Shown in pieces: positions 6,881 to 31,571 of a stretch of DNA of 64,000 nt (position 1 is its first letter; every line of letters starts with the position of its first letter). Origin of the DNA: Oikopleura dioica. Taxonomy: Eukaryota > Animalia > Chordata. The notes under the pieces are model-generated. The model ran no database searches and was not told the origin of the DNA. It worked only from the letters and a program-made list of their open reading frames with translations. The DNA lies in NCBI GenBank assembly GCA_907165135.1, contig OU015570.1, forward strand, positions 1,178,001 to 1,242,000, written 5' to 3'. The position numbers and the translations under genes are program-made.

Positions 6881-9628
6881 ATGCTTTTGCACAACTTGCT
6901 CTACGCGGTAAAAATAAGTTCACCAATGCTAAACGACAGCATCATTCTCTACGAAACTGAGAAAAATGCTTTTACAATCGAATCAGAGGTAAAAAGAAAC
7001 ATCACGTTCATCTTCGAGGCTCCGGTAATCACAAATGATATGGCTGCAACATGCTCAAAAACAAACACGAATCTAACGGAACTCACTCGCGAATATTCTA
7101 ACCTTCTGATCGAAGACTGGCTTCGAATTGAAATCGAACACTCTTACCACCAGAAAGGCTTTACCGTCAGTAACAACAGAATTATACACCACCAATCTGC
7201 GAAATCTGTGAGTATCCAACGCATCCGAATCAACCAGCCGCACTACAAAGTACTTGAATGGAACGGAACGAACGAACATACATTTCATTTTACGATTTGC
7301 GCAACAAAAGAAAATACGCACGTGATCTTCGTGGAAACGAACGAAAATTTCAACAAGCTTTTGCTACGTGTACCAGCCTCGAGTCACCTGAATGACATAA
7401 TATGGCACGTGAAGGGCGAAATTTATTTTCCGAAAATCACAGTGTCAGGTAACTCGGCTATTATTGAATTTGAGGCACCCTACGCAACTGTGTTCAAACT
7501 ACAAATCGACTTTGTTGGCCCAGTCCAAGAAATAGTGAAGGGCCGTTTTGCGGAAACAGCTTGCTTGCAGTTTGAAATTGATGAGTTTTCAGCAGTCAAT
7601 GAAGATCTGCAACAAGAATTTGCCGTTTACAATCCACCATCGGCAGAAAAGACATCAACTCTCCAGGCAACCGGTCAAGCCAAAAACCAAACTATACTTG
7701 GAATCGCATCTTCGTTTGGACTATCCTTCTCATCGACACTTTCTGAAACCACCACATCAAAATTTATCAAAAATCTATGGGGAAAAATTTACCAGCAGAA
7801 TCGAGCAGATTTCACCATCCCTTCGGAAAAGAACACCTTCAACGATATTTTCGTAACAATCCTGAAGAATGGCCGAAGCAGACACAAGTTTGCAACCCCA
7901 GAAAATTTCTGCAAAAGTGATGTAACAAACCTTCAGTTTGTTGTTGAAACAGCGAGACCAATCATTAATATAAGTATACAGCTTGATGTTAACGAAGGAA
8001 CAGCAATGCTCCTTGGACAAACTCAAAACGACCGAATACACGACTACCTGGATGTGTTCAAAACATCTGCCTTTATCGCTAGAGTTGATGCGCTCGAGTC
8101 TAAAACCGAAAATTTCAAGCACGCAGCTGCCAAATGCTACCCGTCTCTTACGAACTATATAGAAATCTACTGCGATATTAACGACGATTTCTACATACCA
8201 GAGGGTAACAGATATTTTTTTCTTCTAGACGCGAAGATTTCGAATGAAAACTGTCTATCACTCGTGGATCTGTTGAAAACGAAAGGATCGACGCTCTTGA
8301 AAATTGAATACAAATCTCGACCAAAATCAGCGAGAAAACGAAGACAAGTTATCTTTCCGTTGATCCTGTCGTCCGCAACATCTTTCATTACGCACAAAAT
8401 CGACACAAACAACATCAAGGCTGCTAAGGAAGAATTGAACAAATGAATCGACATGACTGATTTGATGTTGAACAGACTCACCAAACTAACGGACAAAGAT
8501 CTAACGAACTTGGAAGTTAACTTTGATCATTTCAAAAACGACATCACTAACTCTGTCCAAAAACTCTGCGAAGAAATTGCAGAAATCTCCGACAGGAGAT
8601 TCATCCTGATGATTGACGCGAAATTTAACTATTTCAAAACAAGTGTAAACAAATTTCTGACAGAGGTTAACTCAAAGGGAAATTTTCTAGTTTCATGCAA
8701 GCTGCAATCAACATTTGTCGTTTAATGAATACAGAAGTAAATGATGAAAACTGCTATGCTTACTTGGCAATGAAAAATGTGATTACGCACGGCATCGAAC
8801 CGACTATTGGCAAAAATGGTCAAACATCTCTGAGAATCATCGTCGAACTCCCGATTGGAAAACTACAACGAGTAGGAAATGTGATAAAGATACTCTCAAC
8901 CGGACTCCCGATTGCTCGACAAGGTGATAAATATTTCTACGAGTTTTCGAAAGTTCCGGAAAAAGTGGCGAAAACGGTAGATTCGCTGATGATTTTGGAC
9001 ACTTGTTCAGAAAGCTTCATCGACGGATCACTGCAACAGTGATGATATTCTACAGTCAGAAAATGACGTAAAATGTGTTCAGTCTCTTTTTGCCAGAAAT
9101 CAACTTCTTTGCCAGAAGAAAATATTTATTTCTCCGAAAAAATGTCTTATCAAAGCCGATAAAGAATTTGTGCTAATTTCAACATTTGCGGATGTCACTA
9201 TGATGACGATGTCAAGTCCAAAGCCAAAACTTATTGCTAACAGAACGACAGTGCTGACCATCCGAAGACCGACGGATGACACCATCTTTAACTGTGATTC
9301 CGAACCGATGATGATTCAAGGAGCATCAACAACAAATCGAGACATCGTTACCGTCAAGCAGTCCCACAAAAGCAACGATTTCGTTTCAAATTGGCTAAGT
9401 TCTTCAGAATACGCAAAAGTTGCTCCCTTTGCTAATACGTCCGTCTTCCACGATAAAAATGCCTACAACGAGCTTAGCTCTTTACTCCTCCACGAAGAAA
9501 TTCCGAGGGATTTCAAGAATTTCTATCAGCTTCTTAAACCACACCAATTTACAATCATTATTGTCTCAGCGCTGGTAACTATTTTCACACTTCTAATTTG
9601 TCTCTGCAGGAAAAATTTCCTGGTTTAA
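6881..9628 (+). pseudogene. env: Env-like glycoprotein with class I fusion-protein features, disrupted
   Basis: Hydrophobic N-terminus, N-X-S/T sites, furin-type RKRR followed by hydrophobic QVIFPLILSSATSF, heptad-like region (8453-8725), C-terminal TM segment FTIIIVSALVTIFTLLICLC. Stop at 8444 and later frameshifts. Confidence 0.85.
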
Positions 9629-11796: not shown

Positions 11797-11920
11797 GAAA
11801 TTTTTGAAAATATTTTTGATAAAAGATGATCGACCCAAGGTTCAAACATTCTTCTGGACCCCCTCAGCACTTTTTTCTCAAAAATTTTTCTTCGAAAATT
11901 ATAAGTTACTAAAAATTTAA

Positions 11921-12157
11921 GGCAAGCCCCTTAAATTCAAAAATCAGAAAATGGGGCTGATACAGCCCGAAAAGCCGGCAAGCTCCTTAAATTAAAAAAT
12001 AAGAATATGGGGCTGAAACGGCCCGAAGGCCCGGCAAGCTCCATGATTTAAAAATAAGAAAATGGGGCTGAAACGGCCCGAAGGGCCGGCAAGCCCCTTA
12101 AATTCATAAATCAGAAAATTGGGCTGAGACGGCCCGAAGGGCCGGCAAGCTCCTTAA
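11921..12157. repeat. Tandem array, ~56-bp unit x ~4.2
   Basis: Units start GGCAAGC at 11921, 11977, 12033, 12088 and 12144; a single related unit sits at ~45797-45842. Confidence 0.85.
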
Positions 12158-12619: not shown

Positions 12620-12914
12620 AAAAAGTCATATAAATCCGCTCTAGCGCAGGGGAACCGATATTCGCCGCTCACCGCTCAAGATTGTGCGTGCGAACGCACC
12701 AATCGGGCGGGGGCTGGCTTGTTATGAAAATCGGTCCTCGCGCGAGCAGGATTTTTAGCGACTGAGGTGTTTTTCAAATTCCTGTCGCACGACGCAGGAT
12801 CCTCAGGGCGTTCTAGAGAAGCCGTGCGTATTTTGAACTTCACGCTCCCACGAGCGGGCCTGCAGGTCCTGAGTCTTTCCGACCAGGAATTTTCATGATA
12901 AAGGATAGGTCTCA
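12620..12914. repeat. Terminal direct repeat (3' copy in element orientation), 295 bp
   Basis: Identical by eye to 27631-27925 (AAAAAGTCATATAAATCC...GGATAGGTCTCA). Confidence 0.95.
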
Positions 12915-13317
12915 TAGTAATGAACGTGAAACCAATCAATGCAAATATCCATAAACGTTACCTTACCATTACCATAGATCGGTGATTAATGCACTCTTTA
13001 TCTTGATTCCTTAATATGGACGTTTTCATGCCTCTAAACCACTGCAACATGAATTCTCTTTATCTCTTGCATCCATACCCAAGAAACAGATGTTAGTTTT
13101 CCTGTGCAATTTTATTAAAATAAAGAACCTAACAGTCGAAAGTTTGGGCAAAAGGTTATTGTACCCATCTAACTCTCGCGAGTTAGATGGGTCTGGTTTT
13201 CAATCTTCGCAACTGCACCTTCGGACGATCGCTCGATAAGGCTCGTGTTCTCGAGTTTTCCTTAGGTGAACATTACCAATTTTGCACGCAAAACGAGCTT
13301 CTTACCATTGAATAAAT

Positions 13318-13449
13318 TCATCGAAGCCAGGATTTCGGCGTAGCAGGATATGCTGTCGAAGTCGGATGAGGATGCCCACTTTGAGCTCGCGCTCGCGGAG
13401 GCCTCTCCATCTTCATCTTTGTTTCCTTTTTACCAAAACAGTTTCCCAT
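13318..13449 (-). CDS. ORF-G: micro-protein starting MGNCFGKK (43 aa as read; probably longer through a -1 shift and a 45-nt intron at 13305-13261)
   Basis: TTCATTTTAG|tATG GGA AAC TGT TTT GGT AAA AAG; intron candidate GTAAGA...CCTAAG. Too short for the supplied ORF track. Confidence 0.55.
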   Translation of the reverse strand: MGNCFGKKETKMKMERPPRARAQSGHPHPTSTAYPATPKSWLR

Positions 13450-13503
13450 ACTAAAATGAAACGTTCTAATAACTCCGCGATTTATTTTATTCCGAATCGA
13501 GGT

Positions 13504-13785
13504 CTAAAGAGATTGAGGAAGGTTGCACTGAAAGTACGGGATTTTAAAGAGGTCAAAACCCGTTGCTCGGAGGAGGAAGTCCCGGTCGTCTTTCGCCGTC
13601 TGAGCCATGCGGCACTCGAAATCCTCCTCAGCTAATTCAGCAAGAAGGGCGACCTTCGAGCTGAATGTAGCTGCTCGAAAGACCTGCAGGCGGCCGTTAA
13701 TTCCTATCAACAAAGCTTCTCTAAGGATCTTGACGCAGAACTCGGTCTGTACCACCGAGAGGTGACTTTCGGATGAAATCGTCAT
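13504..13785 (-). CDS. ORF-F, 93 aa, unknown
   Basis: Open frame with GATAG|aaATG upstream. Confidence 0.55.
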   Translation of the reverse strand: MTISSESHLSVVQTEFCVKILREALLIGINGRLQVFRAATFSSKVALLAELAEEDFECRMAQTAKDDRDFLLRATGFDLFKIPYFQCNLPQSL

Positions 13786-13899
13786 TTCTATCTTAACGAT
13801 ATAGATTAAAACCCTTCCGATACTATTTTATCCTGATAACTCGAAACTCCTACAGTAAGTCATGATTCGACAGTAATCAAGTTCCACAGGCGGATCCGT

Positions 13900-14186
13900 C
13901 TAGATACCATGACTCTCCGCCTCGCGGCAGGGAATGTCATTGATCTCAAAGCCGATTTTCTCGAAGACGAAGAGGCAATCTTCAAAGGGTACCCGTTTAT
14001 TGCGCTTTCGAAACAAGAGCGTGGAAGATAGGTAGGCCAGAGCGAAAAGCTTCTTCCTCGGGGTCATCTCTTCCGCGCCCCAAAGCGTGTAGTCATCGTT
14101 CTCCATCTCCGCGCTCTTCAAAATCGCAAAGACTCTTTCGAGCTCATCGGGGAAAGTCTACGCGTAGTACCGGGAATCGTGAACAT
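13900..14186 (-). CDS. ORF-E, ~95 aa, unknown (one -1 shift near 14155)
   Basis: TGTTTAG|taATG at 14186; MFTIPGTTRR joins FPDELERVFAILKSAEM if one T is restored. Confidence 0.5.
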
Positions 14187-14246
14187 TACTAAACAGTTAT
14201 GCAATCAATTCCTTATAAATAACAGCTTGATAGCAAGAAGAGACAC

Positions 14247-15555
14247 TTATAACACATAATCGGAGTTTTGTGATATTTTTCTTTTCTTATTCTCCTTGAA
14301 TTCTCGCCATGACCTCGCTCCTTTGAATTTATCCGTCATCGAGGGGGCATTCGGCGTGGAAGAGGACTCGCGAGAGTCCCCTCTCTCGTTGAAGCACTTA
14401 CATGTAAAACCTTCGGTCTGCGTACCCTTTGATGCCACCTTTGGTTCTAGCTTCAAGGTGGTTTGAACCAATTTCTTTCCGGCTCCCTGTTTTTCTGGTT
14501 CAACAATGACGACATCGGCATCAAACGACGGGTTTTTGTCTCTCTTGATCAGAGCGTTCGCGAGGTTTGGAGGACGAGGGTCGCCCCTTCGTCTTCCTGG
14601 CGCTTTCTCTCAACCATTGCCGCGATGCGATAGTGAGCTCCATACTCTGAGTCCAACAAGAAATAGCTTCTGTAGACCTCGAGCATTTCTGCCGACTTCC
14701 ACCGACATACCGAAATTATGAGACTATCGTCGACTCCGGCTTCACAAGCAGCGATTACGTAGCTGCAACGCATACTGTGCCCGCTCGGAGCGTTTTCCCA
14801 ATTCAGCAACGCCGCTGTCTTTCTATAATAATAGTTGATCGTAGCTGTGACCAGACCTCTCTTAAGTTCTGGGGCAGCAAACAGCTTCCCTGACTCCCTT
14901 CCGTCGATCAGTTTTTCAATCCATTGTTTGATGTTGATGGGAAAATCGGGCAGAATTGGAAGTGAGAGGCTTTCTCGTTTCCTTTTGCTGGCGTTGGTCT
15001 TGCTGGTTCGTAGAGGCATTATAATATATAACGCCTCCTTTTTCTGCTTGAAGATTAGATCTTCAATTCTCAGCGAAAGGATTTCAGCAGTCCTTCCGGC
15101 TGTGTGGAAAGCAATTACGCTCACTATGGCGACCATCTTTTCGATATTAGTCCCGTTATAGAGTCGCCTCCAAAACGGGAGTAACTCGTTTCTACGGAAG
15201 ATGTTTGCTTGGTGAGGCTCATACAAAGACTCGGAGCTTTGAGCTCTCATCTTGCGGTTAATCCACGTTTTAAGGGTTTGTCTCGCCGGGTGAAGCAAAG
15301 GTGTTCCTTCTCTGTCCATCACCGCATTCTGGATGAAACTTCGCAGTTTCTCCCAGCCTTGCGGGATGGAGGGGTTCTTAAGTTTGAGTGAGTCGAGGAA
15401 CTTTTCCATTACTTCGGCTGTGACTACCGACTTCGATTGCCTACGGAATTTTTCCATGTAGAAGATGCCCAGGACTTGCACGCTTCTGGCTTTAAGTCGT
15501 AACGCGCGACTATTGCACCCGATTCACTTGTTTCATTAAATTTCCGATGTCCCAT
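14247..15555 (-). CDS. Tyrosine recombinase (~436 aa after restoring two single bases)
   Basis: Catalytic R in HTAGRTAEIL, K in SKTN, HSMR, Y in WKSAEMLEVY. ATG at 15555 and a C-terminal extension to 14247 join the core ORF 14549-15481 by -1 shifts in A5 and G4 runs. Confidence 0.9.
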
Positions 15556-15765
15556 CTATTAAAGAGTAAATTTTAAAGGAAGTTTTATAGTCCTAACTTT
15601 TAATTTCGAAATAGATCCTAAGCACTAAAATAAATAAGAGGTAGATAAATGAAAGATTAACAGAAACAGCGAACAGATGAATAGCACTATAGCACTCCCC
15701 TAAGGGGTCGAAGAGCGAGCAAAGAAGGAGAGGTCTGCGAAGACCCTCCTTCTTTAATCCGTTCT

Positions 15766-15986
15766 TTAAGATTTCGGCTGGATGTTCTGGCGTCCGGTTC
15801 CGCCTCCTCGGCCACGGCCGCCTCGACCACCCCTCGGCCCCGGAAGTTGTCTTGTGAGTAACCTTGGTTATGAGGGTGGCCATAGCCGCTGTTGTAGCCC
15901 TCCGAATATTGGGCATTGTACTGGTTGTCGTACGAATGCCATTTATTCTGGCCGTGGTTTCCGCCACCAGAGTTGCCGTGGAAGCG
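15766..15986 (-). CDS. G/Y/N/Q-rich plus RGG coding segment (possible terminal exon of ORF-D)
   Basis: RFHGNSGGGNHGQNKWHSYDNQYNAQYSEGYNSGYGHPHNQGYSQDNFRGRG, then GGRGGRGRGGG after a -1 shift in a G run. No clean ATG or acceptor resolved. Confidence 0.55.
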
Positions 15987-16113
15987 TTAAACCATAAGAT
16001 CAAAAAACTACTTAGTTTTAAACATTTTTTATATTTTGTAGCGAATGATTCATAGTTCTAAGGTAATCTACTTCATTTACGTCCAAATCCTAATCTAAAT
16101 ATAAACACATAAA

Positions 16114-17258
16114 TCAATCACCTCCTCTGCCTCCGCGACCTCTCGGCTTGTTCTTTTGGCCACCACGGCGAGTTTGCTTGTTCTCAGCCTTCGCCTTGTC
16201 CCGACTTTCCTTCTCAGCCAAAGCATGCGCCCGCTTCAAGTCGTCGGCGTACTCGATCTTTTCCTCCGCGGTCATTGTGGCGTGATCCCGCTTGAGTTTC
16301 CTCAAATACTGGGTATCCGCCTGAGAATCGAGCTGGTTCTGCATGAATCGTTGTTGTCGATTCTTGTCAGGGTCCATGGACGAGTGCAAGATCTTGTTAT
16401 CTGCATCATTGTAGGCCATTCTGGTGATGCAGTCGCACAAGTCAGACATGGTCGCCTGAGTGCAAGCTTTGCGACAACTGAGAAGGAAATCGAAACGAGA
16501 CATTGTCTTGTTTTCCAGCAAATTCTGGAGGCAGAGGTTAAGGTTCGGGAAGCTGTGGTGGTCGTGGCCAATAGCTTGAGTATAGCGTGATAAGATATCT
16601 TTAGCTTTCGCGAAAGTGAGGGAAGCGATTCCCTCCCTTGTCGCTACTGCTTTACGCCACTCAATCCCAACCTTGCGGGCATCTTCAGCCTTGGGCTGTT
16701 CAAGATCGTCCGAGCCCAGGCAAATCTTGTAAAACGCGCCGTCATCCGTTTTGTAGGCGAAGTCGGTTCGTCGTTCCTCGACGACGTATTTCTTCAAAGC
16801 GGCGACGCTTTTAGAAATAACCTCGTCGAGGGCGAGCTGTTCCGCTCTTATTTTGTTGGCCTTCATCAGGGCGTTGTCCAAGGACTCCTGAACCGTTTTA
16901 GCGTCCATGGCCCAGGCTTCTTTATCTCCTTCATGGAGATCCAGGCCTCGTTCTACGCGACCCTTGCAGTATTCTCTCGCATCGACAATGTCCTGCCATT
17001 TGAGTGTCTCTTCGGCGGCTTGTTTCGCGAGGCCGAGAAGCCGAGCTCGGCGGTTCTTATCCGCTGCAATGGCCTCATATTTCAAGGCGAACACATCGTC
17101 CTTAAGGCGCTCCTCCATGATGAAGTCATAGTCGCGCTTGTTGATCTTGACGGTGCCAGCTGTCATTTCCATTCTTCTAAACGCAGCGAGTCTTTGCTGG
17201 TTAGAAGCGGAGTTTGGGTTTTGAAACCCTCCATGTTTAGAAAGGCCAAATCGTTCAT
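16114..17258 (-). CDS. ORF-D, ~381 aa, helical/coiled-coil with basic RG-rich tail (possible nucleocapsid-like protein)
   Basis: 352-aa ORF 16114-17172 extends to the ATG at 17258 with one -1 shift; TTCTTCAG acceptor 9 nt upstream; ends RRGGQKNKPRGRGGRGGD. Confidence 0.75.
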
Positions 17259-17368
17259 GATTTCAGTCTGAAGAAATGAAATAAATTTCCCAATCTCAAC
17301 TTGAGACTACAAAATATGCTTCAAGATACAAAAATAGAACATCAAGGGAAAGGGGCCTTCGCAGGCCT

Positions 17369-19751
17369 CTACTCCCCTTTGTGTACAATCAAAGACAAAT
17401 GTGCTTTATCTGGGTGTTTCCAGTAGCCGAGATCGTGGTCTAACTCATCTGTCGGAAAAAGGATTGGCATCTCTTTCCACTCAACCCATTGAAGATTGTC
17501 GAGATGGAACACTTCACTTCTCAAAGGGGACAAAATTTCATATTCAATGACGGCCAGCACCCACGTTGCCTTCTTTGCTCGTTCCAACAACAATTGAAAC
17601 GTAGGAATCAACACCGGTTGAGGCGGGAAGAGCCAGGCCGTTTCGTTCTCCAAAGACTTGATTGTCAGAAAATTCGTATGAATCGAGCCCTGCTCGTCGT
17701 GTAGTGACATGAATCTTTCTGTTTTTCTGTTGTGAACTGTTGCGAAACAGTCCACAGTGAATTTCAAACCCAAAGATTCCTCAATCCTCCTGAACCCATC
17801 GTGCGAGACAATCGCTTGTCTCGCATCAACGGTTCTAGAGGGTTCATCGGCTTCTTGTTCTAGCGTAGAAACCCATGTTACGTCCAAGCTGATGTTGTTA
17901 TCGTGGGCCGCTTCATTGATTCTTTTGATGATCCTTGTCAAAGGCAGATTTGAGCTTCCGAACTTGAAGGTTTCAGTGACAGCTCTGTTGTCACAATAGA
18001 AAATAACCCTTCTATTCTGTAAACGGTGACCGTATTTTTCCAATGCTGCTAAGATTCCCACGCCTCCTTCAAGTGGATCGCCGACCGAGCTATGGCATCT
18101 CCTTCGGACCAAGTAATGGTTTCGTTTATGCCGAGATCGTTTATTACGATACCTCCAGCGAAGCTGGAGGCGTCGGTTGAAATCACTGTTTTCGCCGCCA
18201 CGACGCCCGGCTCAAGCCACGATCTAGTTTTCGTGATGTATTTGGATTTAAGCCAAACGAGGAGTTCCTCGCGGAGCTCCTCGGTGACTCTGACTTCCTC
18301 ATCTCTCGCGTTTTTGATGGCATCCGTACAAACTCTGATGTAGAGTCGCATATTCGATATGACGAGGCACATCGAGGCCATTTTTCCCCTCAAGCGTTCG
18401 AGAACTTTCACGTGGACACGTTTTTCTTTCTTACTGCAGCGGCTTCCTGTTTGAAGCGTTCCCATTTCGCTCTCGGGATGGCGATTGTGCAATCGATCGT
18501 ATTTATCGTGAAGCCGAGGAACTCCAAGACCTGCAAAGGTCTCGGAGTACTCTTCTTCCGGTTGATGAACGTGCCGAGTAAGGTAAAGAGGAGAAGGGCT
18601 GCGACAAGTTCCCTTGGAGTTTTGGATCCATTAAGGAAGTTTCGGGCTTGAGCTGGAGAAGAGGGGCGCACGATTAACAGCCTATCGTCCAAGTACAAAA
18701 AGCACCTGATTCCTTGTTTTCTTAAGTAATTAACTGGGGTGCCATTGCATAGTTGATAATGGCCAGGGATGGCCGGAAGGCCGAAAGCCGCGCCTCTGTA
18801 GCGAAAGAGGTTTCCGCCTAGCTGGCAAAAAGCGAGGTTGCGGGAGAAAGGGTCGAGTGTGAGGTGGTGGAAGCCACTTTTATCGTCCCACTTTGAAAGA
18901 AGGTCGCCCTTCTTCAAAATTTTTAGGACTTGGCCGGCTGAATCAAGGTGACACGGTTGCGTGTATCTTTCGAGGACCTTGAGCGGGCCACCATTATAGC
19001 ATGTCCGCCACTGCTCTTCTCCTTGCTTCGGCACCACTACCCAATTCGCCATCATGAGGATCGAATGTTTTGCTTCCGGCGGTCTGTATTCGAGCGCTGC
19101 CGACTCCATCCACTTTTTAATTTGATTCGCGATGACTCCGATGTGTTTATTTGTGCCCTTCGAGTTTTTTATCACCAAAGGCTTACCAAAATTATCACCG
19201 TCTGCGAAGACGGGATAATGGATTTGCCTTGTATAATGGAACTTTCCGACTCGGTAACGATCTTCGCCTTTCATCCTTGATTTCATCTTAAGCTCGTTGT
19301 CTGGGTTAGTCTTGTAGTACGAAGCCACCTTGAAGTTTTTATACCTCTTCGCCTTTTTAACTGGCACGTGCATGAGGTTTTGAAACAATGAAATTCCTTG
19401 ATGAATATCATGGTACGCCTCCGGGCGGAGTTTCTCTGGCAGATAATTAATAAAGATCAGCCACAAATCCACATTGTCCGCAAAGGTTCCACATTTGAAG
19501 TCTTTTTCTGAGCGAAATCGTACCAAGTTCCAGTCGGGCTCGACGTCGCCGTCGATGACCCTTTGGAACGTCTGTAAAGCTTCAACTGAATACTGTTTCC
19601 ATTGCGCGTCCGACCAGTAAGGCGCCGACTTATCATCTTCCTCTTGATAAAGTGTGAGGGAGCGCACTTCTTGTCGTTTATCTGGGAGGCCTTCGCCGTT
19701 CTTTAGGCCTCCGAGCCACGCTTTTGCCTTTTCGTTATCCAGCCTAAACAC
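17369..19751 (-). CDS. pol: Pol: RT - RNase H - Dam-like methyltransferase domain, no in-frame ATG at start
   Basis: RT: KWDDKSGFHH, AFGLPAIP, YLDD, FLGF. RH: STDAS, HLKEA, YCDN, ADEPSR. MT: VDCFAT...N, WLFPP. Three ORFs join by -1 shifts at ~18420 (A5) and ~18058 (G3). Confidence 0.92.
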
Positions 19752-19883
19752 ATGGAGCTGAGGAGAACGTTATTCCTAACAGGTTTAAATTATGAGAGGC
19801 AGACCCTAACGCGCAAAGAAACAGCTGTGAATTCAAGTGGCCCAGGTTAGGCGGGTCCTGCGAAGGACCCGCGTAACTAGAAC

Positions 19884-21289
19884 TTAAAACATCATGTCTC
19901 CAAATGTGGCGAGAGAAACCTCGGCCTCCATTTGGGCCTTTCGGTTCATCTCTCTTCGTCTTTTGACGTGTTGCATGTAACCTCCCTCAAAGCCATCGTC
20001 GTCCGTCGGTGTTGTAATGACGGGCCGATGTTGGACAACTTGTCTTGGTGGTTCGGGCTTTGGTTGAGGACTAAAGAGTATTTATAGGGGTTACTACTAC
20101 AATAACAATAATGGTTCGTATGCTAAGATTTTATCAAATGAAGAGCCTTCAACAGAAAACTCAGACGGCTCCCGCAACCTGCTAAGTTATGGTTTTCAGT
20201 TTTTACCTTTTGCTCTCGGCCCAGTTATCCAGGCCCTTCTCGATCGCCTGGTCGATCTTCGCAAAACCGAGCGCGACGTAAGTCCGCGAGTTCATTTCAT
20301 CGGCGTCGGGAAAAAGACCCTCACCAGCTCCATCGCCTTTTGCTTTGTGATTGCGTTTTGGCGGTCTTCTGCTTTTGAGGAACTCGTCGAGCCTCAAACT
20401 CCCTGTGACTTCTCTCCGAAGAGGACCGCGAGGTCCTTTCGGATACCAGTCACAAGGTTCGTCAAGCGGGATGGCGAGAGCGACTCGGGATCTAGCAGCC
20501 ACATGCGTAGATCCTTCATCACCGTGACGTAAGTTGCCGTGGCGATGGCAGCTAAACCGTCCTTCAGCGAGAGGGCCAGGGCTGACTTGATGGGGTTTTC
20601 TCCCTTGATCTCAAAAAGAATTTGAGAAAGCCACTTGAACTCGGCGACTAATTTCTCGTCGTCGCCCTTAGCATCGATTAATAGAACGGCCAACTCCGCC
20701 TCGTTGTAGATGGCCTGTTTGGGCTTAAGGTTGACGTTGCACATTCGATAGAGGGCCGCCATCTCTTTATTAATCGTAATGGCCAAGTTCTCGCTAAACA
20801 AAGCTTGAACTTTCAGCGCCTGACCAAAGGTGATGTTGCCATCTCTTCGGAAACGATCCGTTTCGGACTCAATTTCTCGAAGGAAAACGACGAATTCATC
20901 TGGGCAAATTCTTTCGCCAATCGTGCAAGCAACCCTGCTTTTACGTTGGAGGCTAGGGATTTGTTTTTCCAGCTTTTCAAGTCTTTCGTTGACAGCTGTG
21001 TCAATCGTCGCCGGTTGAACCTCGCGGTTCAACTCGGCTTGATCTCTACTTGCTCGGCTTCGATATTATCGAGCCTAGCCACAACTTCTTGAAAAGCTTC
21101 CGATTCCAAGACTGCTACAGTAACGTCCTTCACTTTCGTGGTCTTTGGCTTGGCCGGGGCCTTCGTTTTCACCTCCAAGGCTTGGACCTTCGGCTTCACC
21201 TCCGTCGCCGGAGTAGTTGCCGAAGTGGAAGCCGCTAGAACTTCTTCAATCGATGGAATTTCTTTCAAATCGGTTTTCTTTGGAGGCAT
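19884..21289 (-). CDS. ORF-C, Gag-like by position; exons 21289-20207 and 20070-19884
   Basis: TTTAG|aATG; three ORFs joined by two -1 shifts; donor AG|GTAAAA at 20206 joins acceptor CTTTAG at 20071 in frame, adding 61 aa. Confidence 0.65.
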
Positions 21290-21761
21290 TCTAAATTCAG
21301 CAATTTGTAACCTTTTAAATTTAAGAAGTTATATTTTCCAGTCACATAATGAATACTTTTTATCTTTGAATTTGAACTTAAGCAACAAGGCTCTTTTCAC
21401 CCTTCGACCCTCGACAACTCAACACCGGCCGGCCCAACAGCAAAAGGCTCCGGAAATAGAGTTTCTAGTACTTGAAGGTTCGTGCCCAGTAAACTGGGGC
21501 CTCTCGCGAAGCGACTTATCGAACAGTCGAGTATAGAAACTCCTATTTGACCGGCCACAATCGACCTGAGGAGGGCAGAAGGGTGAAAATTTTTAAAGAA
21601 ACAAATCACAAATAGACAAAGGAATGACTTTAACAACACAGTGAAATTTCAAATAGTAGAGAAGTCACAATGACTAAATTTTGAACTAAAAATTTTGAAC
21701 TAAAAAACTGACAGAGGTAGTACATGATCTTGGTTTAGGGTAGGCATTTTCTTATTTTCCA

Positions 21762-22121
21762 TTATTCTCCGTGATCTTCATCATCGGATTGCCGTGGATA
21801 AAAATCTTTGGCGAAGCAATGAAAGACTGTTGGCAAGCCTAGCTCTTCTCGTTTTCTTGTTTCTTTGAAGAGCTGGTTCCTGACCGCCGAGCCGTTTATA
21901 TTTCCAAACCTTTGCTCAATGTCCGCTAGAAACTGCGAAGTTTCAGCGGGCATTTCAATGAGCAAGTCGAACAGGATAGTTCCTTGCTCGTCGGCCTTTG
22001 TCGGCATGAAAGTTTTACCGGAGATAATTTGTGCAGCTTTTGTAATAGCCGCCTTTTGGCTTATTGACAGCGCAGAGGTGTTTATATCGCATCTGTCAAC
22101 CAGGTCCGCTTCAGTTATCAT
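21762..22121 (-). CDS. ORF-B, 119 aa, unknown
   Basis: Its ATG overlaps the upstream TGA (ATGA at 22121-22118). Confidence 0.6.
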   Translation of the reverse strand: MITEADLVDRCDINTSALSISQKAAITKAAQIISGKTFMPTKADEQGTILFDLLIEMPAETSQFLADIEQRFGNINGSAVRNQLFKETRKREELGLPTVFHCFAKDFYPRQSDDEDHGE

Positions 22122-25100
22122 GTTTCTCCGGAAGCGTTTTCGCGTTTCTCTTCTGGACCTGTTAAGCCCTTTTTTCTTTTGAGCGTCAGTTCTTTCTTTG
22201 ACGACTCCTTGGCCCCCTTCGAACTCGACCCGACGGTTTTGCACCGCGAGCCTATTCGAGGACTCGTTTTGGATTTTTGATCCTGTCTCCTTTTTACCGG
22301 CGGAAGGCCGCCTGCGAAGGCTGACCTTGCCGGTGAGTCTTCGGTTTCGGAGTCGGATGTATCGGGCGAATCGACGGGGTATGACACCGTGGAATCGGAA
22401 AATTCGTCGAAGCAGGCAACCCTTTCTGACAGTCTTCGAGCCATCCAAGGCTGGCCCCTGTTGTCTTTCAAGACCAGCGAAGGCTGAGATCCAAGATTAA
22501 CTCTTTCCAGCTCCGCCCAGATTTCGTGACTAGCGAAAGAGTCAACGACCTCCAACAAGGACTTGTCCAGATGTTGAAGTGACAAGTTCCTTAGAATTTC
22601 CAAATAGTGCCTCGAGTGTCTGCTCGTGATCGCTCTTGGCTGCGTTTCCGCTGAAGAAGAAGCCCCGTCCCCGAAAACAATTCGCATTCTCATCGGGAAC
22701 AAGGGTCTCTCCCCATCAGAAGAGTCTGAGTCTGACGGGATTTCCGAAGGATATTTCGTATTTCCCTTCTTTTGTCGAAAGGTTTCTTCTGTTGTTTAAA
22801 CGGGGGCTTTCGCTCGACGAGCTGGTGCCTTCTTGGGTTTGTTTCGAGTCCCGTTTCTGAGGGACGGGAACAACTGGTCCTTTAGCGGCTCTTCTCCTCG
22901 CTGCCCTTTCTTGACGAGTCTTGACCTCCGCTTCGAGGGCCAGTCTGTCAGGGTTAGCGTCCATGGTTCTTTCGCTGTTTAAAAACCAGATGGGGCCTCG
23001 GGGAGAGACGCTCGCGCGTCTCTTCCCTCGTCCGTTGTCCTCGTCGGCGACTGAGCTCTCGAAGAAGCCCTTGAAGTGGATGTCGATGACGCCAAGGATG
23101 GAATAGGCGTTGGGTGAAAAACGTCGTACTCAGCAATTCTTTCTCGTCCGTGCAGCAAAAACTCGTTTTTGACGTGAAAGTAAGGGTTCATTTCGGGAAC
23201 AACTGGGTGTTCAGATCTCACTGGTTGGAGTTTGTGACGATCTTCGGGGTTTTTAGCGAAAGATCGAGTACAGAAGATGTCATTCCAGTACTCGAAAGAC
23301 ATTCGGTACTTCTCTTTGTCGGCTCTCGTCGGAAAAGTTTTAACCCAAATTTCCCACCAGGCTTTCGCAAGCTCTGGTGTGATATTTGGGTCTTTTCTTA
23401 AGTTTCGGAGGATCGACGAATCAATGTCCGAGAACCATATGAAATCGTGTTCAACCGCTCTGATCCTTGCCGCAATCTGACCCAATCTTCTTTCCAAAGA
23501 AGTAGTCAAAACCGTTATGACAAAGTACTCTTCCTTCATTGGTGCCCAGGTTGTTTTGGGTTTTGCAGCATAGCTAAAATCGAGGTTCTCGACCTCTACG
23601 AGGTGGAGTCCCTCGCGGGCCCTCCACTCGATTAGAAACGCCGCGAAATCGGCTGCTCTTTCCTCCCTGTCAGCCTCGGTACTTCTTGATCTCGCCGCGG
23701 GGTTCCAGGACGCTGGGCCCCAAAGATTTTCTGGTAAGAGGCCCTTGAAGCTCTCGTCATGGCAAGCAGCTCTGAAGATTGTGCTCCAAGCATACGTGCC
23801 AGGTCTCGGTGGAGAAGGGAACTGATCATCCTCTTTAATTTGAGGATGAAGAAACGTGGTCATTTTGTTGCCGACCCACTTCTCGTAGTAGCCCAAGACC
23901 TTATCCTTCATTTTTTGTGTTAAAATAGCCACTTTTGACGGTGGCGAAGAGGCTTCAGGAGACTTTGCCAGGTGTTTCTTAGCAAAGTCCACGTATGCTG
24001 GACTTACAAGAATGGCAATCTTCAAAGTGGGAAAGTCGCGCTCGATTTCTCGAATCAGGGTAAACTCGGGGAACTGGTATTGTTTTCCTTGCGGCGGGAG
24101 ATGCATCTTGGCATTGAAACGCTTCTTGATATCCGCCAAATCGAAGTTAGGAGGACGGCACAAAGTGTTCTTCACGTATTCCTTGGAGATCCCGTTTCTA
24201 GCTGTGGTGAAATGACATCTATCATTTATGTTAACCACCGTAAACGGATCTTCTTCCCAAACTCTCGAGTAGCCTTCTGTTTTATGCAGGATGAAGAAAA
24301 GACAAGGAGTTGTCACTTGAGAGAACCTCGCGGTTCTCCAAGGCAACTCCCCGTCGAGCTTATCGTAGTTGTCGTTGATGTAACGAAGAGCGTTGAGCGT
24401 CTTGTCACTTTCAGCGACCATTCGGCCTTCCCACGTAAACTTTCCACCCGTTGCGAATTTCAAAGACAAGAGCTTCGCGTGGTAGATCGGCATAACACCT
24501 TCTCCCGTCTTTTTCCTGAAGGAGTTGACGATCTCAAGCATGAGTCGGGCGCGCAGCTTTGGAGTCGCCGTGACCCGTGGTCGAGGCGCTGGGAGTCTTT
24601 CGTTGGCCATTTCAACACCTTGTCCGTCGATGCGCGGGACTAGGGTTGTCAACGGTGAAAACGATTCGCGCATTGCTGCTTCCGAGTCCGCTCTCAAATG
24701 AAAGAAACATGCTGGTGCTACTCCGCATGATTTCTCGTTGCATCCGATAAACGCACAGGCATCCGGATCTTTTTCGAGCTTGGTGACATCCAACAGCGGG
24801 CCTGAGACTTTTTCGTTTTTCACCAATGATCGTTTAGGCTCGACATCTTTGTGCCATTTGTAATGGCTCATGTCTGGATCGTCAGGGGAGACTAAATCAG
24901 TGCCGAACCAATTCATATATCGGTCAACCATTTCGATCATTGAAACCCGCGAGGATTTAATGATGAATTGGGATAAGTTGTGGCCGATGAGGGTTTGCTT
25001 TTTCGTTTTTAATGCCTTGGGGAGAACGAAGACTTTGACCTGAGTCCTCTCTTCTATCTCAATCTCATGAGCTTGGGCTTTGACGACTTTTTCGATGAAT

Positions 25101-26404
25101 TTGTCCCAAGCCTTGACGACCGGCACCAGATTTCCTCTCCAATTCTTCTCGATTTCTGCTTCGAGGTTCCGCAGACTTTTCAGGGTCTTTTCCTCCTCAT
25201 GTCCAGATTTTGCTATTACTCTCGCGAGTTTTAGCAAATATCTGACTTGATCGGGGTTCGTGACCTTTTCCGGGAGAAGCATATACTGGATCGGCTCTGT
25301 GGCGTAAATCAGCCAGAACGAAAGGTCTCCGATGTCGTTCAGCATTTTTCGAGTGTTTGGGAGGATCTTGAGATCATCGTATCTCGGGATATAGGGAGGG
25401 TTAAACCAGTCCATTAAATTGGCACAAGCAAAGGCCGTTGAGGGTGTAGTTCCTTCGTTGAATTGCTTTGCCCACTCGTAAGCCCATTGTACACCAATCC
25501 GGATGATGTGGCTTAAACTTATCCAGAAAGCTTCGAATCCCCAGCTGAGATCGAAAGCTTCAGCAAAAACCGAAATTTCTGCTCTGACTTGCTCTGCTCC
25601 TTTGTCGAAGTCAACAGGGTCGTTCGTGCGGCTCGCGAGAGCCACAGCGAACTCATTGATGTTATCGAATCCCCCGAAGCCAACTCCGATCTTTCGCCAG
25701 AGAAGGGCCGCCGTTTCTCTGTAGAAGTCGAGTTCTACCTTTTGAGTCGGGAATTTTTCTTTAACAGTATTGGCTATATCATTTAGCTCTCGCGAGCTAA
25801 TGACAGTCAATATGTTGATGGCGACTGATCCGGCTGGTTGAGAGGAAGGTTGAAAGGAGATCCATTCTTTCACTGCTTTTTCCACGGTATCTAGACTAGC
25901 AAACTCCGAAACGACTTGAGGGGCGACGGATCTTTTTCCGCTCCTTTTGATGTTAAATAAAGGGGCCGTGGCGTTCGCTACCATCATTTTTGTTGGGTCC
26001 TTCTTGGCATCTTCTCCCTGAAGGGCCAGCAGTTGTGCAATCTTGAGGTCCCAGACCTTTTCCGTTTCAGGCTTATCGGGGACGAAAAAGAGATCTCTCG
26101 CGAGATCTTCTTTTTCTCCCAGCTTTTCCGTCGAGTAAACAAGTCCATCAGAATGAGCAGGTAATGACCACAGTGGCTTCCTGTTAAGAGCGAGTGCCGG
26201 AGCTGCAAAGGACAACCAGCTAATCGCATGCGACGCCAGTTCGACTGAGCTAAAACACAACGTCATCAAGGGAATGAGAATTTGTTTGAAATGGGCCATG
26301 TTGTTTTCTATCGGAAATTCCCCCCTTTGAAGGATTATCGCGCCGGTTATGGGAACAGCGGCGGGTGGTTCGAACTCTTTCCCTTTTTCTAAAGTGTGAA
26401 TCAT
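22118..26404 (-). CDS. ORF-A, unknown giant protein (1141 aa uninterrupted, ~1430 aa if three -1 shifts are corrected)
   Basis: 3.4-kb open frame 22979-26404. A protein-like -1 frame from ~23115 (YSILGVIDIHFKGFFE) runs into ORF 22716-22964, then into 22118-22702. Confidence 0.8.
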
Positions 26405-26507
26405 TTTCAGGCGATATAAGCTCGCGCTTATTCGCCTGAACCTTCATTCGGGCCAACCGAAAAAGAAAAAAGTTTTCTAAATTAAGCCTCTTTTCTTTAC
26501 CCCAACA

Positions 26508-26927
26508 ATGTCTTTTTCCGACCATCGTCCCGAGACCGAGAGAGAACGTCGTGACCGAGAGACTAATGAGCTCAAGGAGTTCTTGAAACTCAGCCACTGG
26601 CTCCTAGCCGAGGTAAATCAGGTCTTAAAGCTGAAGGACTAGTTTTAAATTTATATATTCTATCAAGAAAAAATCTCAAATCAATCTTGATAGGGTCCCC
26701 GCCTCCGCCGAGGGGAGATCACCGAGGAAAGCCTTCGCCCTTTGGCTCATCAAGTCAATCATGCTATGTGGGATGCCGAGAAGACCATCAACTGCCGATA
26801 CTGGCGCGATGTCTACAACACCCGTCCCAAGACCGACTCTCTACGACAGCTTCTGGATGAGGTCCTGATCATGAAAGCCCGCATCAAAAAACCCATTCGC
26901 ACCGTTCTCGATAGCGCGTGCATGTAA
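26508..26927 (+). CDS. Small two-exon gene antisense to the element (~112 aa)
   Basis: ATG at 26508, donor GAG|GTAAAT at 26613, acceptor TTGATAG at 26693, in-frame exon 2 to TAA at 26927, AATAAA ~50 nt downstream. Confidence 0.6.
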
Positions 26928-27073
26928 ATCTACTGTATCTTTATAATTTCGGACTAAGTTCAAATTTCCCGCTGCAATAAAGCGTGTAATCGGCCATTTA
27001 TCAATCAACTTCTATGTGGGGGAAAACAGCTTTCGCAAGCTGCTATCCCCTTCTAGAACACTTGTTTTGTCAT

Positions 27074-27555
27074 TTAGTAAAGAGGTAAAAAGACTCGGAG
27101 ACTGAGCCTTCGGATCGATTCGATTGAAAAGGGCGAATTTTCTCTAGAACCGTTGTTTTGGTTAAATCTAAAGCCGTTCCGAACTGACCGATGTATCCTT
27201 CGGGAGGGAATAAGGGGTCTAAAACACCCTTTTTTCGAGCAGAAAAACCCAAAAAGAGTCATAAAGCTCACCTGATCGATGTCGAGACTAGGCAGAGCGC
27301 AATTCTTCCATCTGAGGCATCCAGACGAAGCGGTGTCCAGTTGTTTTGGGCGAATAACCACGAGGAACCGGCAAATTCGCGTTTTTGAGGGTTGAACGCC
27401 GGGCCGTCGCCGCTAAGCTGCGAAGCAAAGTCGACGACGTAAAAGGACGTCAGCGGGTTTATTTGCCATCTATTGATGCAAACCGCCCCCCATAATTCGG
27501 ACTCTTCCCTGAGCCAGTCGCACGTGTCACTTCGTTCCGGTATAAGCTCTCTCAT
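27074..27555 (-). CDS. ORF-0, two-exon gene (~142 aa), unknown
   Basis: Exon 27555-27272, 53-nt intron GTGAG...TTTTAG (27271-27219), exon 27218-27074; total 429 nt, in frame. Confidence 0.6.
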
Positions 27556-27630
27556 CGGAAAAATTGCATACAGTCTAAAAAACTGAAGTAAAATATCCGC
27601 AACATCTAAAATAAGATAAAGAGTGCAGGA

Positions 27631-27925
27631 AAAAAGTCATATAAATCCGCTCTAGCGCAGGGGAACCGATATTCGCCGCTCACCGCTCAAGATTGTGCGT
27701 GCGAACGCACCAATCGGGCGGGGGCTGGCTTGTTATGAAAATCGGTCCTCGCGCGAGCAGGATTTTTAGCGACTGAGGTGTTTTTCAAATTCCTGTCGCA
27801 CGACGCAGGATCCTCAGGGCGTTCTAGAGAAGCCGTGCGTATTTTGAACTTCACGCTCCCACGAGCGGGCCTGCAGGTCCTGAGTCTTTCCGACCAGGAA
27901 TTTTCATGATAAAGGATAGGTCTCA
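27631..27925. repeat. Terminal direct repeat (5' copy in element orientation), 295 bp
   Basis: Identical by eye to 12620-12914. Confidence 0.95.
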
Positions 27926-30086: not shown

Positions 30087-31571
30087 CAGGGGTCTGGATT
30101 CGCTTTGCGAATTCGCTCATGAGCGAAGCGAAGCGAAGCGAAGCGAAGCGAATTCGCTTCGCTTCGCTTTCGCTTTTTGTTATTCCAATTCGCTTCGCTT
30201 CGCTTTCGCTTTTTACCAAAAATTTTCGCGAAAATTTCGCTCAAAAGTAATCTTTCCAAGAATTGAAAATTTATCCTTTTTTATTTAGCTTTAGCTTAAA
30301 CTCGAGTGGAAATTTTGCTGAATGAGCTAAATTGGCACTTTTGAAAGCTGACCTGAGAAAAGTTTTACTGTTTTCAAAGTAGCCAATTTTGTGAGCTGCG
30401 CTGAGCTGAGCTGTCCTTCACAAATAATCATTGAGCTGAGCTGACTCTTCAAATTCATTCAGTTAATTTGAGCTAGGCAGTCAATATTATAAAATGATTG
30501 ACCTGAGCTGAGCCACACAGCCTCCTCAGCTCACAAACCTCGGAAAATTTGCAATTTGAAAAATCGGAGAGGGAGTCCGAATGGAGTGGTCTTCATTTTC
30601 TTGAGTCGCTGTTTGCCCAAGATCTCTGTTTGCCCAACATGAGGAATCGGCGAATTGGACAAACGGCGATGTATTATAATTTAAATCGATTGATCTTATG
30701 ACTACATATATTGGCCTCCCCACAATCAATCCTGACATCACCATTTTCAATCCCGGCTTCAAAAACTTCGATCCTTGCTTCTCAGACATCGATCCAGGTT
30801 GTCATATAAATCATCATATCAACCTTGGCATCAACCAGCATCAATCCCGGCTTCTTTAACACCGATCCGGGCGTCACCATTTTCAATCCTAGCCTCTCAG
30901 ACGTCAATTCCGGCTTCTCACTTGTCGATCATGGCTTTTTCAAGTTTGGATTGACAATGTCAATTTGACATTGGAGAAGCCGGGATCGACATTGGAAAAG
31001 CCATGAATGGCCCATGATTGAAGTCGGTAAAAACAGAATTGAAGATGTTGAAACCAGACTTGACGATAAATAAGCCATCATTGATAAAATATGGATGATG
31101 TTGAAGAATACATGATTGAAGTATGTGAAGCCAGGATTGGCATTGATGAAGCCAGGATTGACGTTGGAGAAGCCAAACAATGTTTAATTTTCAATCTATA
31201 TAATTTTTTTCACATCGCCGTTTGCCCAAGATCTCTGTTTTCCAAAGTAAGGTAAACGACGATTTTGGGAAACGGCGACTTGGGTAAACGGCGACGCAGG
31301 CAAACTGAGACCATCGTCCGAATGTCCGAAAAACTAATTAAAATGAAATCATACATGAAATGGGCACTTTTTCAAAGGTTATATATTCCTAGAAAATTTT
31401 CGCTTTTTTTCGCTTTTTAGGAAAATTTTTCGCTTCGCTTCGCTTCGCTTCGCTTCGCTTTCGCTCACGAAATTTTGATTCGCTTCGCTTCGCTTTCGCT
31501 TAAAATTTTTGAAAAATTTTCGCTTTCGCTTCGCTTTCGCTTTTCATTCTTGGCCAAAATCCAGACCCCTG
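30087..31571. mobile_element. hAT-like MITE with (GCGAA)n/(TTCGC)n subterminal arrays, containing nested insertions
   Basis: TIR CAGGGGTCTGGATT / AATCCAGACCCCTG; ATTTGAC duplicated on both sides (7 bp match, not the usual 8). Confidence 0.75.
30583..31315. mobile_element. MITE with GG start and 8-bp TSD, nested in the previous element
   Basis: TSD GTCCGAAT at 30575-30582 and 31316-31323; degenerate TIR; internal inverted arrays of AATCCCGGCTTC-like units. Confidence 0.7.

Follow-up and report, generated by a model that had tools for sequence, protein, structure and literature searches.

The retroelement and its genes

We analyzed a 64,000-nucleotide (nt) stretch of the genome of Oikopleura dioica (Okinawa, OKI2018_I69), positions 1,178,001 to 1,242,000 of contig OU015570.1 in assembly GCA_907165135.1, a 2.9-Mb record named Y-specific region; this whole stretch is called the window below. 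At 12620..27925 it holds a whole retroelement, here named E, which leaves a window remainder of 48.7 kb. Our subject is an array of small hairpins in E that have the same 4-nt loop, GCGA or its reverse complement TCGC, on unrelated stems, and to which an earlier note on this DNA had drawn attention. All recognizable genes of E are on the minus strand, its sense strand. The parts of the element are listed here in sense order (window coordinates); L006 is a second copy of the family and L002 a metagenomic relative, both described below.

12620..27925, sense = minus: whole element E, a 15,306-nt tyrosine-recombinase retrotransposon (direct repeats, G+C, and matches to reverse transcriptase [RT] and tyrosine recombinase [YR])
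27631..27925, minus: 5′ terminal direct repeat in sense orientation (repeat search; sequence read)
22979..26404, minus: intact 1141-amino-acid (aa) open reading frame (ORF), the clade hallmark, carrying 10 hairpins (relatives P0009-P0013)
21762..22702, minus: middle gene A, whose two halves match one continuous L006 frame at 57-59% aa identity; one frame change in E
20203..21032, minus: middle gene B, 48-67% identical to P0014, which in L006 is an unbroken gene of 365 aa; one frame change in E
17369..19751, minus: pol, with RT, RNase H region, and Dam-like methyltransferase (MT) region, read in three frames with two frame changes
16114..17172, minus: intact 352-aa ORF conserved in the clade (27% identity, E value = 7 × 10−25, to a 346-aa ORF of L002)
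14549..15481, minus: YR ORF (PF00589 Phage_integrase, 44.9 bits versus a cutoff of 27.1, E value = 1.4 × 10−11)
12620..12914, minus: 3′ terminal direct repeat in sense orientation (repeat search; sequence read)

E is a DIRS-order retrotransposon. It encodes a YR (PF00589) instead of a DDE integrase, without an rve domain, and its RT is on the same strand as YR and upstream of it; the sense order is 1141-aa ORF, two middle genes, pol (RT, with an MT-like last third), 352-aa ORF, and YR. Co-oriented RT, Dam-like MT region, and YR in that order are also found in DIRS1-like and PAT-like elements (PMC3266345, PMC7192593), although the MT match of E is weak. The DIRS1-like elements described, which are already known from O. 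dioica, are smaller than about 6 kb, with three ORFs (PMC3266345), and have inverted repeats and an internal complementary region, whereas E measures 15.3 kb, has seven or more conserved coding regions, with conserved ORFs of 1141 and 352 aa as additions, and carries plain 295-nt direct repeats; terminal inverted repeats such as those of the DIRS1-like subgroup were not found in E. Of the split repeats of PAT-like and Ngaro elements (A1...B1 A2 B2), E has one pair (A1/A2), and no second pair was found by the 3′ repeat with a 12-nt seed and a 25-nt minimum, a search that could miss short or diverged B repeats.

The two terminal repeats are 100% identical to each other, which suggests a young insertion, and about 200 nt of them can be aligned with the terminal repeat of L006 at 74-85% identity. 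G+C is 0.45-0.50 within E versus ~0.38 in the flanks. No further copy of E was found within the window by blastn or tblastx, and across the whole window there was no Rfam 15 match at gathering score and no tRNA. Inside the terminal repeats (12733-12752, 27744-27763) lies an imperfect palindrome centered on CGCG, which is kept at ~8410-8430 in L006 and adjoins a hairpin with a 40-mer identical in the two copies.

The RT in pol matches RVT_1 (E value = 3.8 × 10−6, 27.2 bits) just below the gathering cutoff of 29.6 and is 41-45% identical to proteins bearing PF00078; the pol of E as a whole shows 39-47% aa identity to the RT/pol ORFs of the relatives L002, L004, and L005. A weak match to Dam (PF05869, E value = 0.022, 14.9 bits versus a cutoff of 28.1) lies in the 3′ third of pol, at the expected place for a DIRS MT, and this region is conserved in L002 and L004. 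Relative to its relatives, the reading frame of E is changed at four places: twice in pol, where one change has a counterpart in a relative, and once in each middle gene; because the assembly is Nanopore-based (PMC8008620), some of them may be residual indel errors. Searches with the RT and middle-gene proteins returned no nearer relatives than 44%-identical ones plus the second copy L006. The 352-aa ORF had no Pfam match and no PDB sequence match, and the 1141-aa ORF had no Pfam family. An exhaustive protein search with the latter found six proteins, with identities of 53% (P0009), 32-35% (P0010/P0011), and 22-24% (P0012/P0013); a word search returned only the query and missed the 53% relative. 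An AlphaFold2 model of this ORF from the six-sequence alignment was poor (predicted local distance difference test score of 40.8), with confidence only at about aa 170-330, which are helical, and a Foldseek search of the model against PDB gave only noise.

A hairpin array confined to the element

We called a hairpin perfect when its stem had 5 or more bp and its loop 4 nt. The window contains 27 such hairpins with a GCGA/TCGC loop (13 GCGA and 14 TCGC on the plus strand), all within E at 12684-27710, and the other 48.7 kb contain none. In dinucleotide-preserving shuffles of E (n = 300), the mean count was 0.16, and no shuffle exceeded 2. Hairpins in E with any other 4-nt loop were not enriched (24 observed versus ~17 expected). 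When bulges and mismatches were allowed, the plus strand of E showed 39 strong GCGA/TCGC hairpins (free energy [ΔG] of −10 kcal/mol or lower) versus 2 outside E, and an unbiased two-strand scan, in which one terminal repeat was counted, gave 42.

A typical hairpin of E has 13-15 bp on average (range, 10-16 bp) and a ΔG of about −18 kcal/mol with RNA parameters. At many sites, a bulge or a small internal loop separates a short apical stem from a second stem, and one-base bulges are frequent. The stem arms, separated by the 4-nt spacer, share no sequence among hairpins, and the most frequent sense-strand form is C(GCGA)G (12/23). Nine hairpins folded with DNA parameters gave −10 to −15 kcal/mol (z = −2.3 to −7.5), compared with −2 kcal/mol (z = −0.2) for a control stretch.

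The earlier note had listed 17 hairpins, nine with GCGA and eight with TCGC on the plus strand, and each of them was recovered with the same stem start and loop, although the list fell short of the 27 perfect ones. The unrelated stems and the placement within coding regions that it described are likewise seen here. The hairpin that it placed in both terminal repeats is the single hairpin of the 295-nt repeat, present twice. A hairpin between two convergent genes was not borne out, all recognizable genes being on the minus strand, and its statement that hairpins stand just after stop codons holds for one clear case, after the pol stop, with no general pattern.

The hairpins of E are given below from an energy scan that allowed imperfect stems. 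Coordinates are those of the window, no strand is assigned, and loops are written as on the plus strand.

12672..12710: in the 3′ repeat, loop GCGA at 12690; 16 bp, ΔG −22.1, 40-mer identical in L006
13163..13192: loop TCGC at 13176; 13 perfect bp, DNA-folded
13370..13406: loop TCGC at 13387
13632..13670: loop GCGA at 13649
13909..13940: loop TCGC at 13922
14352..14391: loop GCGA at 14370
14565..14601: in the YR ORF, loop TCGC at 14581
15147..15184: in the YR ORF, loop TCGC at 15164; 3 bp, 3×3 internal loop, 7 bp
15329..15356: in the YR ORF, loop TCGC at 15341
15721..15755: loop GCGA at 15737; 15 bp with one bulge, DNA-folded
16610..16644: in the 352-aa ORF, loop GCGA at 16625
16787..16819: in the 352-aa ORF, loop GCGA at 16802
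17011..17045: in the 352-aa ORF, loop GCGA at 17027
17346..17376: directly after the pol stop codon, loop TCGC at 17359
17725..17761: in the methyltransferase region of pol, loop GCGA at 17742
17801..17826: in pol, loop TCGC at 17812
18254..18286: in pol, loop TCGC at 18269; DNA-folded
18892..18918: on a conserved RT motif, loop TCGC at 18904; 7/10 residues identical to three relatives, no gap
19192..19218: in RT, loop GCGA at 19204
19529..19567: in RT, loop TCGC at 19546
19845..19878: loop GCGA at 19860; the strongest, ΔG −26.7, DNA-folded
20415..20443: loop GCGA at 20428; orthologue L006 15731
21004..21043: loop TCGC at 21022; orthologue L006 15137, 4 compensatory pairs
21188..21225: loop TCGC at 21205; no L006 counterpart
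21918..21954: loop GCGA at 21935; orthologue L006 14273, DNA-folded
22296..22334: loop GCGA at 22314; orthologue L006 13890
22664..22703: loop TCGC at 22682; orthologue L006 13525; strong on the sense strand only, via G-U pairs (sense ΔG −18.7)
23000..23027: loop TCGC at 23012; orthologue L006 13189, 6 compensatory pairs
23352..23382: loop TCGC at 23365; orthologue L006 12821
23599..23630: loop TCGC at 23613; orthologue L006 12573
24310..24346: loop TCGC at 24328; orthologue L006 11868
24932..24967: weaker hairpin, loop GCGA at 24949; orthologues L006 11282 and L010 1052, the sole position common to three lineages
25205..25243: loop TCGC at 25222; no L006 counterpart
25622..25652: loop GCGA at 25635; orthologue L006 10599
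25779..25803: loop TCGC at 25790; orthologue L006 10444
26080..26119: loop TCGC at 26098; orthologue L006 10145, DNA-folded
26406..26440: loop TCGC at 26422; L006 hairpin ~27 nt off in the alignment, DNA-folded
27018..27051: loop TCGC at 27033; L006 hairpin ~46 nt off in the alignment
27405..27439: loop GCGA at 27420; orthologue L006 8746, 3 compensatory pairs
27683..27721: in the 5′ repeat (same as that at 12690), loop GCGA at 27701; orthologue L006 8471

At 21004-21043 a second GCGA/TCGC hairpin (loop at 21008) overlaps the one with its loop at 21022, so the two can fold only alternately.

Three familiar kinds of hairpin or repeat site do not describe the array. A run of T, as in intrinsic terminators, follows the hairpin at 2/39 sites on the sense strand and 3/39 on the plus strand. 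A slippery heptamer, as for stimulators of programmed −1 frameshifting, lies upstream at 1/39, and most hairpins are deep inside single ORFs. Recombinase core sites of the lox/FRT type need conserved arms and a 6-8-bp spacer, whereas the arms in E are unrelated and the spacer is 4 nt.

Hairpins built within coding sequence

The hairpins occupy all three codon phases and are also found in noncoding stretches and in the terminal repeat, which rules out a codon or peptide artifact. Synonymous-codon shuffles of seven ORFs of E gave 0.24 hairpins compared with 16 observed; together with the dinucleotide shuffles, they exclude chance or composition as the source. We then considered six pol hairpins in single-frame alignments to three relatives (39-47% protein identity). 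There was no gap on the relatives' side and one one-residue gap on E's side, and residue conservation at these sites was ordinary. The lack of gaps on the relatives' side means that nothing was inserted in E there and, taken with the codon shuffles, indicates that the hairpins are built by choice among codons and tolerated residues. The 1141-aa ORF stays open across its ten hairpins. Insertions or template-switch products were ruled out by the absence of gaps and by the covariation described below, and mobile palindromic insertions of the REP/MITE-like kind by the unrelated stems and by the six pol sites, which are not insertions relative to their homologues.

Spacing and strand symmetry

The hairpins of E are more evenly spaced than expected from random placement or from a random choice among the 172 GCGA/TCGC words of E: the mean distance is 395 nt, with a coefficient of variation (CV) of 0.54 versus 0.97 expected (P < 5 × 10−5), and the largest gap is 894 nt versus ~1670 nt expected. 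The corresponding values for L006 are 403 nt and 0.39.

On the sense strand, 26 loops read GCGA and 16 read UCGC, which is no departure from 1:1. The stems have a mean ΔG of −19.3 kcal/mol on the sense strand and −18.8 kcal/mol on the antisense strand (P = 0.23), with 36 G-U pairs on the former versus 38 on the latter, and the picture in L006 is the same. Pairs changed on a single side between E and L006 comprise, on the sense strand, 10 G-U and 15 A-C, an A-C being a G-U on the other strand. An excess of G-U pairs or an energy bias on either strand was sought three ways, and none was found; a structure of the sense RNA only would normally show an excess of G-U on that strand. The earlier note had named packaging marks, recognition of single-stranded DNA or cruciforms by YR or MT, and processing signals as candidate roles; the present data narrow these only insofar as a signal of the sense RNA only, as well as processing and terminator roles, is disfavored. 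Within the 1141-aa ORF, the loop orientation is skewed (sense, 8 GCGA versus 2 TCGC). Since the sole loop alternative is the exact reverse complement and the stems are symmetric, the data are most simply read as a requirement for the same hairpin on the two strands alike.

Compensatory changes in a second copy

L006 (OU015570.1 1382221-1406663) is a second, diverged, 3′-truncated copy of the family about 170 kb from E, found through the 53%-identical protein from the exhaustive search. The repeat is present in its element part (L006:8250-15972), as are the large ORF (P0009) and the middle genes (P0014), and pol, YR, and a second repeat are absent; a protein-kinase gene follows. Over ~8 kb, E and L006 have 57.6% nucleotide identity, with 67.5% in hairpin arms. 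The element part of L006 has ~21 GCGA/TCGC hairpins, compared with one in 16.7 kb of flank.

Fifteen hairpins stand at identical alignment columns in the two copies, with the same loop in the same orientation and all loop letters identical (60/60), while the stems differ at 14 of the 15. Base pairs that changed on both sides between E and L006 were paired in both copies in 29 of 35 cases, compared with 26/138 (19%) in slid controls, in which the partner was shifted by 1-3 positions (binomial test, P ~ 5 × 10−16; Fisher test, P ~ 2 × 10−12). A further four or five strong hairpins are private to each copy; in two instances a private hairpin of one copy lies near one of the other, at 27 and 46 nt, where the alignment is poor. 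These results show that the array is kept by natural selection on nucleic-acid structure and that its stems evolve by compensatory changes. The reading of the array as a dispersed structural signal, which the earlier note had offered, passes the enrichment and covariation checks alike; orientation independence, the other part of that reading, describes the array overall, but single sites keep their own orientation between the copies (15/15).

Related elements and their loop words

Relatives of E were collected by their RT from marine metagenome loci (30-55% identity to E). These RT-based relatives have no GCGA/TCGC array, with 3 weak hairpins in ~125 kb of other loci. The short contigs L008-L011 (Logan SRR29245573/5, SRR36426654; ENA ERZ23498532), from two unrelated sequencing projects, encode relatives of the large ORF (32-35%) and carry GCGA/TCGC hairpins at a density similar to that in E (5-8 per ~2 kb). 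When this lineage was compared with E and L006, one hairpin position was common to all three and the others were displaced by 10-55 codons; the pair count from three sequences at the common position is weakly informative, as bulges shift the register. Selection thus preserves loop word, pairing, and density, and individual positions turn over slowly.

Four of the RT-based groups had hairpins with loop words of other kinds:

L002 (with overlapping L025): 23 strong hairpins versus 3-8 in shuffles; word ATA plus one or two bases (ATAN), in one orientation only; 9 with the word
L004: 14 strong hairpins versus 2-8 in shuffles; words GGAC/GTCC/GACC/GGCC; 5 with the word
L016 (with L005/L015): 6 strong hairpins in L016; ACT/AGT triloops; 4 with the word in L016
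L012: 11 strong hairpins, no excess (4-15 in shuffles); words ATT and GAA; 5 with the word

In eight shuffles per locus, these words occurred 0-1 times. Hairpin arrays are therefore recurrent in the clade and not universal, the loci without an array being named below. In JGI sample 3300072015, a 12.2-kb contig has the gene order RT...346 aa...192 aa...1173 aa, a circular permutation of the order in E; such an order would be expected from a circular or tandem form or from an assembly that ran through terminal repeats.

A proposed multi-site signal read on single strands

The explanation that we tentatively prefer is that the hairpins may be multi-site binding signals of an element-encoded protein that coats, packages, or organizes the 15-kb single-stranded genome and tells it from that of relatives. 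The GCGA-loop hairpin would be needed on both strands of E and read on single-stranded intermediates of both polarities, that is, on genomic RNA and on single-stranded complementary DNA (cDNA) as made by DIRS-type elements. DIRS-1 yields single-stranded, mostly linear cDNA intermediates (PMC7192593), so the antisense-strand hairpins would have a stage at which to fold. The use of other loop words by related elements argues that the reader of the loop is lineage-specific, and it would most likely be a protein of the element; binding at many sites would coat, package, or organize a long single-stranded genome, and by the loop word the proteins of an element could distinguish its nucleic acid from that of related elements.

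The closest known parallel in form is multi-site packaging signals, which are dispersed stem-loops with a common loop motif and differing stems to which the cognate coat protein binds (PMC6281560, PMC7612645). Like the array of E, those of single-stranded RNA viruses and hepatitis B virus (PMC6281560, PMC7612645, PMC4751978) comprise many stem-loops across the genome, coding regions included, with a short common loop motif that is lineage-specific and positions kept between relatives (in E, 15 with L006, one of them also with L010, and others shifted). They differ from it in lying all on the packaged strand and in tolerating degenerate loops, whereas the loop of E is invariant and faces both ways; moreover, the stems of E have no RNA-type G-U bias, no coat protein was recognized, and the carrier is a tyrosine-recombinase retrotransposon. 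Retroviral packaging also uses specific tetraloops, GGAG/GGUG being bound by nucleocapsid, a chaperone that also binds cDNA, and GACG forming kissing tetraloops. These resemble the hairpins of E in having a specific tetraloop on an otherwise variable stem, but they are few and clustered in the 5′ leader, whereas the array of E is element-wide and comes with no zinc knuckle.

Several points weigh against the preferred explanation. Among the proteins of E, no gag-like, capsid, or zinc-knuckle domain was found that would point to a loop-binding protein (zinc knuckles were scanned in the sense frames), and the 1141-aa ORF yielded no usable structural model and no fold match. The known packaging signals are all on one packaged strand, while 16/42 loops of E face the other way. 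The covariation rests on two copies, both in one chromosome region, and the loop words of the relatives were chosen after inspecting the data. There is no hairpin array in L007, L013, L020-L022, L024, L026, and L027, the last of which has the highest best-segment RT identity to E (55%) of the metagenome loci; with so many relatives lacking it, the array is not essential to the clade. Finally, the loop word of the metagenomic relatives could be determined by a factor of their hosts and not by a protein of the element.

Alternative explanations

The hairpins could instead act as DNA, in single-stranded cDNA or as cruciforms, with the loop as the recognition word of a Dam-like N6-adenine methyltransferase, for self-marking, or of YR; we regard this as unlikely. 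A short asymmetric word in both orientations (26:16, not different from 1:1) resembles a DNA recognition sequence, the stems are strand-symmetric and fold well with DNA parameters, and each loop word has an adenine on one strand. The 3′ third of pol contains the weak Dam-family match, and methyltransferase recognition words vary by lineage, as do the loop words here. Integron integrases offer a precedent as tyrosine recombinases that read folded single-stranded hairpins with nonconserved stems: attC sites form hairpin arrays with unrelated stems, are read by IntI as folded single-stranded DNA, and have informative extrahelical bases, which the one-base bulges of E recall. The attC sites, however, are intergenic, with a single site to each cassette, and contain conserved core boxes, whereas the hairpins of E, about 40 in number, are within genes and have only the loop in common. 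What the MT domain does in DIRS-like elements is not known (PMC3266345). Relatives with the same pol/MT region have no array, the MT assignment (E value = 0.022) falls short of the Pfam cutoff, the ACT/AGT word, with 3 nt, would be a short target for an enzyme, forty recombination sites in essential genes would be destructive, and the regular 400-nt spacing is left without explanation.

A network of loop-loop contacts, in which GCGA and UCGC loops would pair within one RNA or between two copies and so compact or dimerize the 15-kb genome, seems improbable to us. The two loops are exact complements, a relation that GGAC/GTCC and ACT/AGT also show in relatives; ATAT and GGCC are each complementary to themselves, and both loop types are similarly frequent on one strand. 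The GACG tetraloop of a gammaretroviral packaging hairpin mediates kissing dimerization via only two G-C pairs. On stable stems, tetraloops and triloops are nonetheless sterically ill suited to loop-loop helices, a complementary partner is lacking for most L002 loops (ATAG, ATAC, ATAA), the ratio in the large ORF is skewed (8 GCGA to 2 TCGC, sense), and the absence of a G-U preference is unexpected for an RNA-only structure.

We find it similarly doubtful that the array is generic RNA structure serving host-element conflict or expression (a shield from silencing, nucleases, or cryptic splicing), with the loop as the most stable cap. GCGA fits the GNRA pattern and is on the sense strand at 26/42 sites, the remaining ones showing UCGC there, and C(GCGA)G leads among the sense forms, as noted above. 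The coding regions of RNA viruses are known to contain pervasive structure (PMC3950689), and DIRS-1 is under tight RNA interference control (PMC7192593). On the other side, none of UCGC, ATAN, GGAC, and ACT is a loop of special stability. The genome-scale ordered RNA structure of persistent RNA viruses (PMC3950689) is like the array of E in its pervasive selected base pairing over coding sequence and unlike it in having no common or fixed loop word, no regular spacing, and no strand symmetry. E shows no sense-strand bias, and its loop letters, invariant between copies (60/60), point to sequence-specific reading and not to stability alone.

That the hairpins are a mutational by-product (template switching or snap-back synthesis by RT or an end-joining polymerase, or small palindromic insertions) or an assembly artifact is very improbable and close to refuted, even though the stems are perfect Watson-Crick copies of local sequence and O. 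dioica is not known to have classical end joining. The assembly is Nanopore-based (PMC8008620), but the same kind of hairpins occurs in the independent short-read assemblies of L008-L011, positions and loops are kept with compensatory changes between copies at 58% identity, the spacing is regular, the 1141-aa ORF is open across ten hairpins, and the six pol hairpins entail no length change versus relatives, with encoded residues ordinarily conserved.

Novelty and implications

In full-text literature searches we found no description of hairpin arrays in tyrosine-recombinase retroelements, and an overview of DIRS1-like elements (PMC3266345) has no occurrence of hairpin, stem-loop, or palindrome. 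What is unusual here among dispersed stem-loop signals is the use of both orientations, the invariant loop, the DNA-like symmetry, and the private loop word of each lineage, and the array looks like an undescribed recognition code of this mobile-element group. It might go further and represent an undescribed class of cis-element, in which a lineage keeps a private loop word on regularly spaced hairpins of both strands, read on cDNA and RNA by an element protein, in one version the Dam-like MT; we consider this conceivable but rather unlikely. If the MT did read the loops, this would be the first proposed substrate and self-marking role for the Dam-like methyltransferase domain.

The replication of DIRS-type elements is still sketchy, and the hairpin code gives mappable sites at which single-stranded intermediates must be contacted. 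The question of what the unknown element proteins bind becomes addressable with descriptive data (structure probing, base-modification calls, comparative genomics). The array of E is also a very clean natural case of strong structural selection over protein-coding sequence, in which the loop is invariant and the stems covary. Should such arrays serve in packaging or self-recognition, the principle of dispersed signals for packaging would extend from RNA viruses to retrotransposons.

Other features of the window

At 281-8446 (plus strand) lies a Ty3/gypsy-like long terminal repeat retroelement whose gag has a zinc knuckle; separate ORFs for RT, RNase H, and integrase come next, and the integrase is followed by a 523-aa ORF that matches no family. 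This element has no GCGA/TCGC hairpins. A 55-56-nt tandem repeat at 11879-12153 (four copies by repeat finder), ~470 nt from the left end of E, has units that are strong hairpins, mostly with GAA loops. A long near-perfect palindrome centered on AATT (~30118-30175, about −33 kcal/mol) is unrelated to E. Long ORFs at 38708-39928, 47439-48728, and 46153-47415 have no Pfam match and are probably further repeat-derived sequence; at 46153-47415, ORFs overlap on both strands in a G+C-richer patch.

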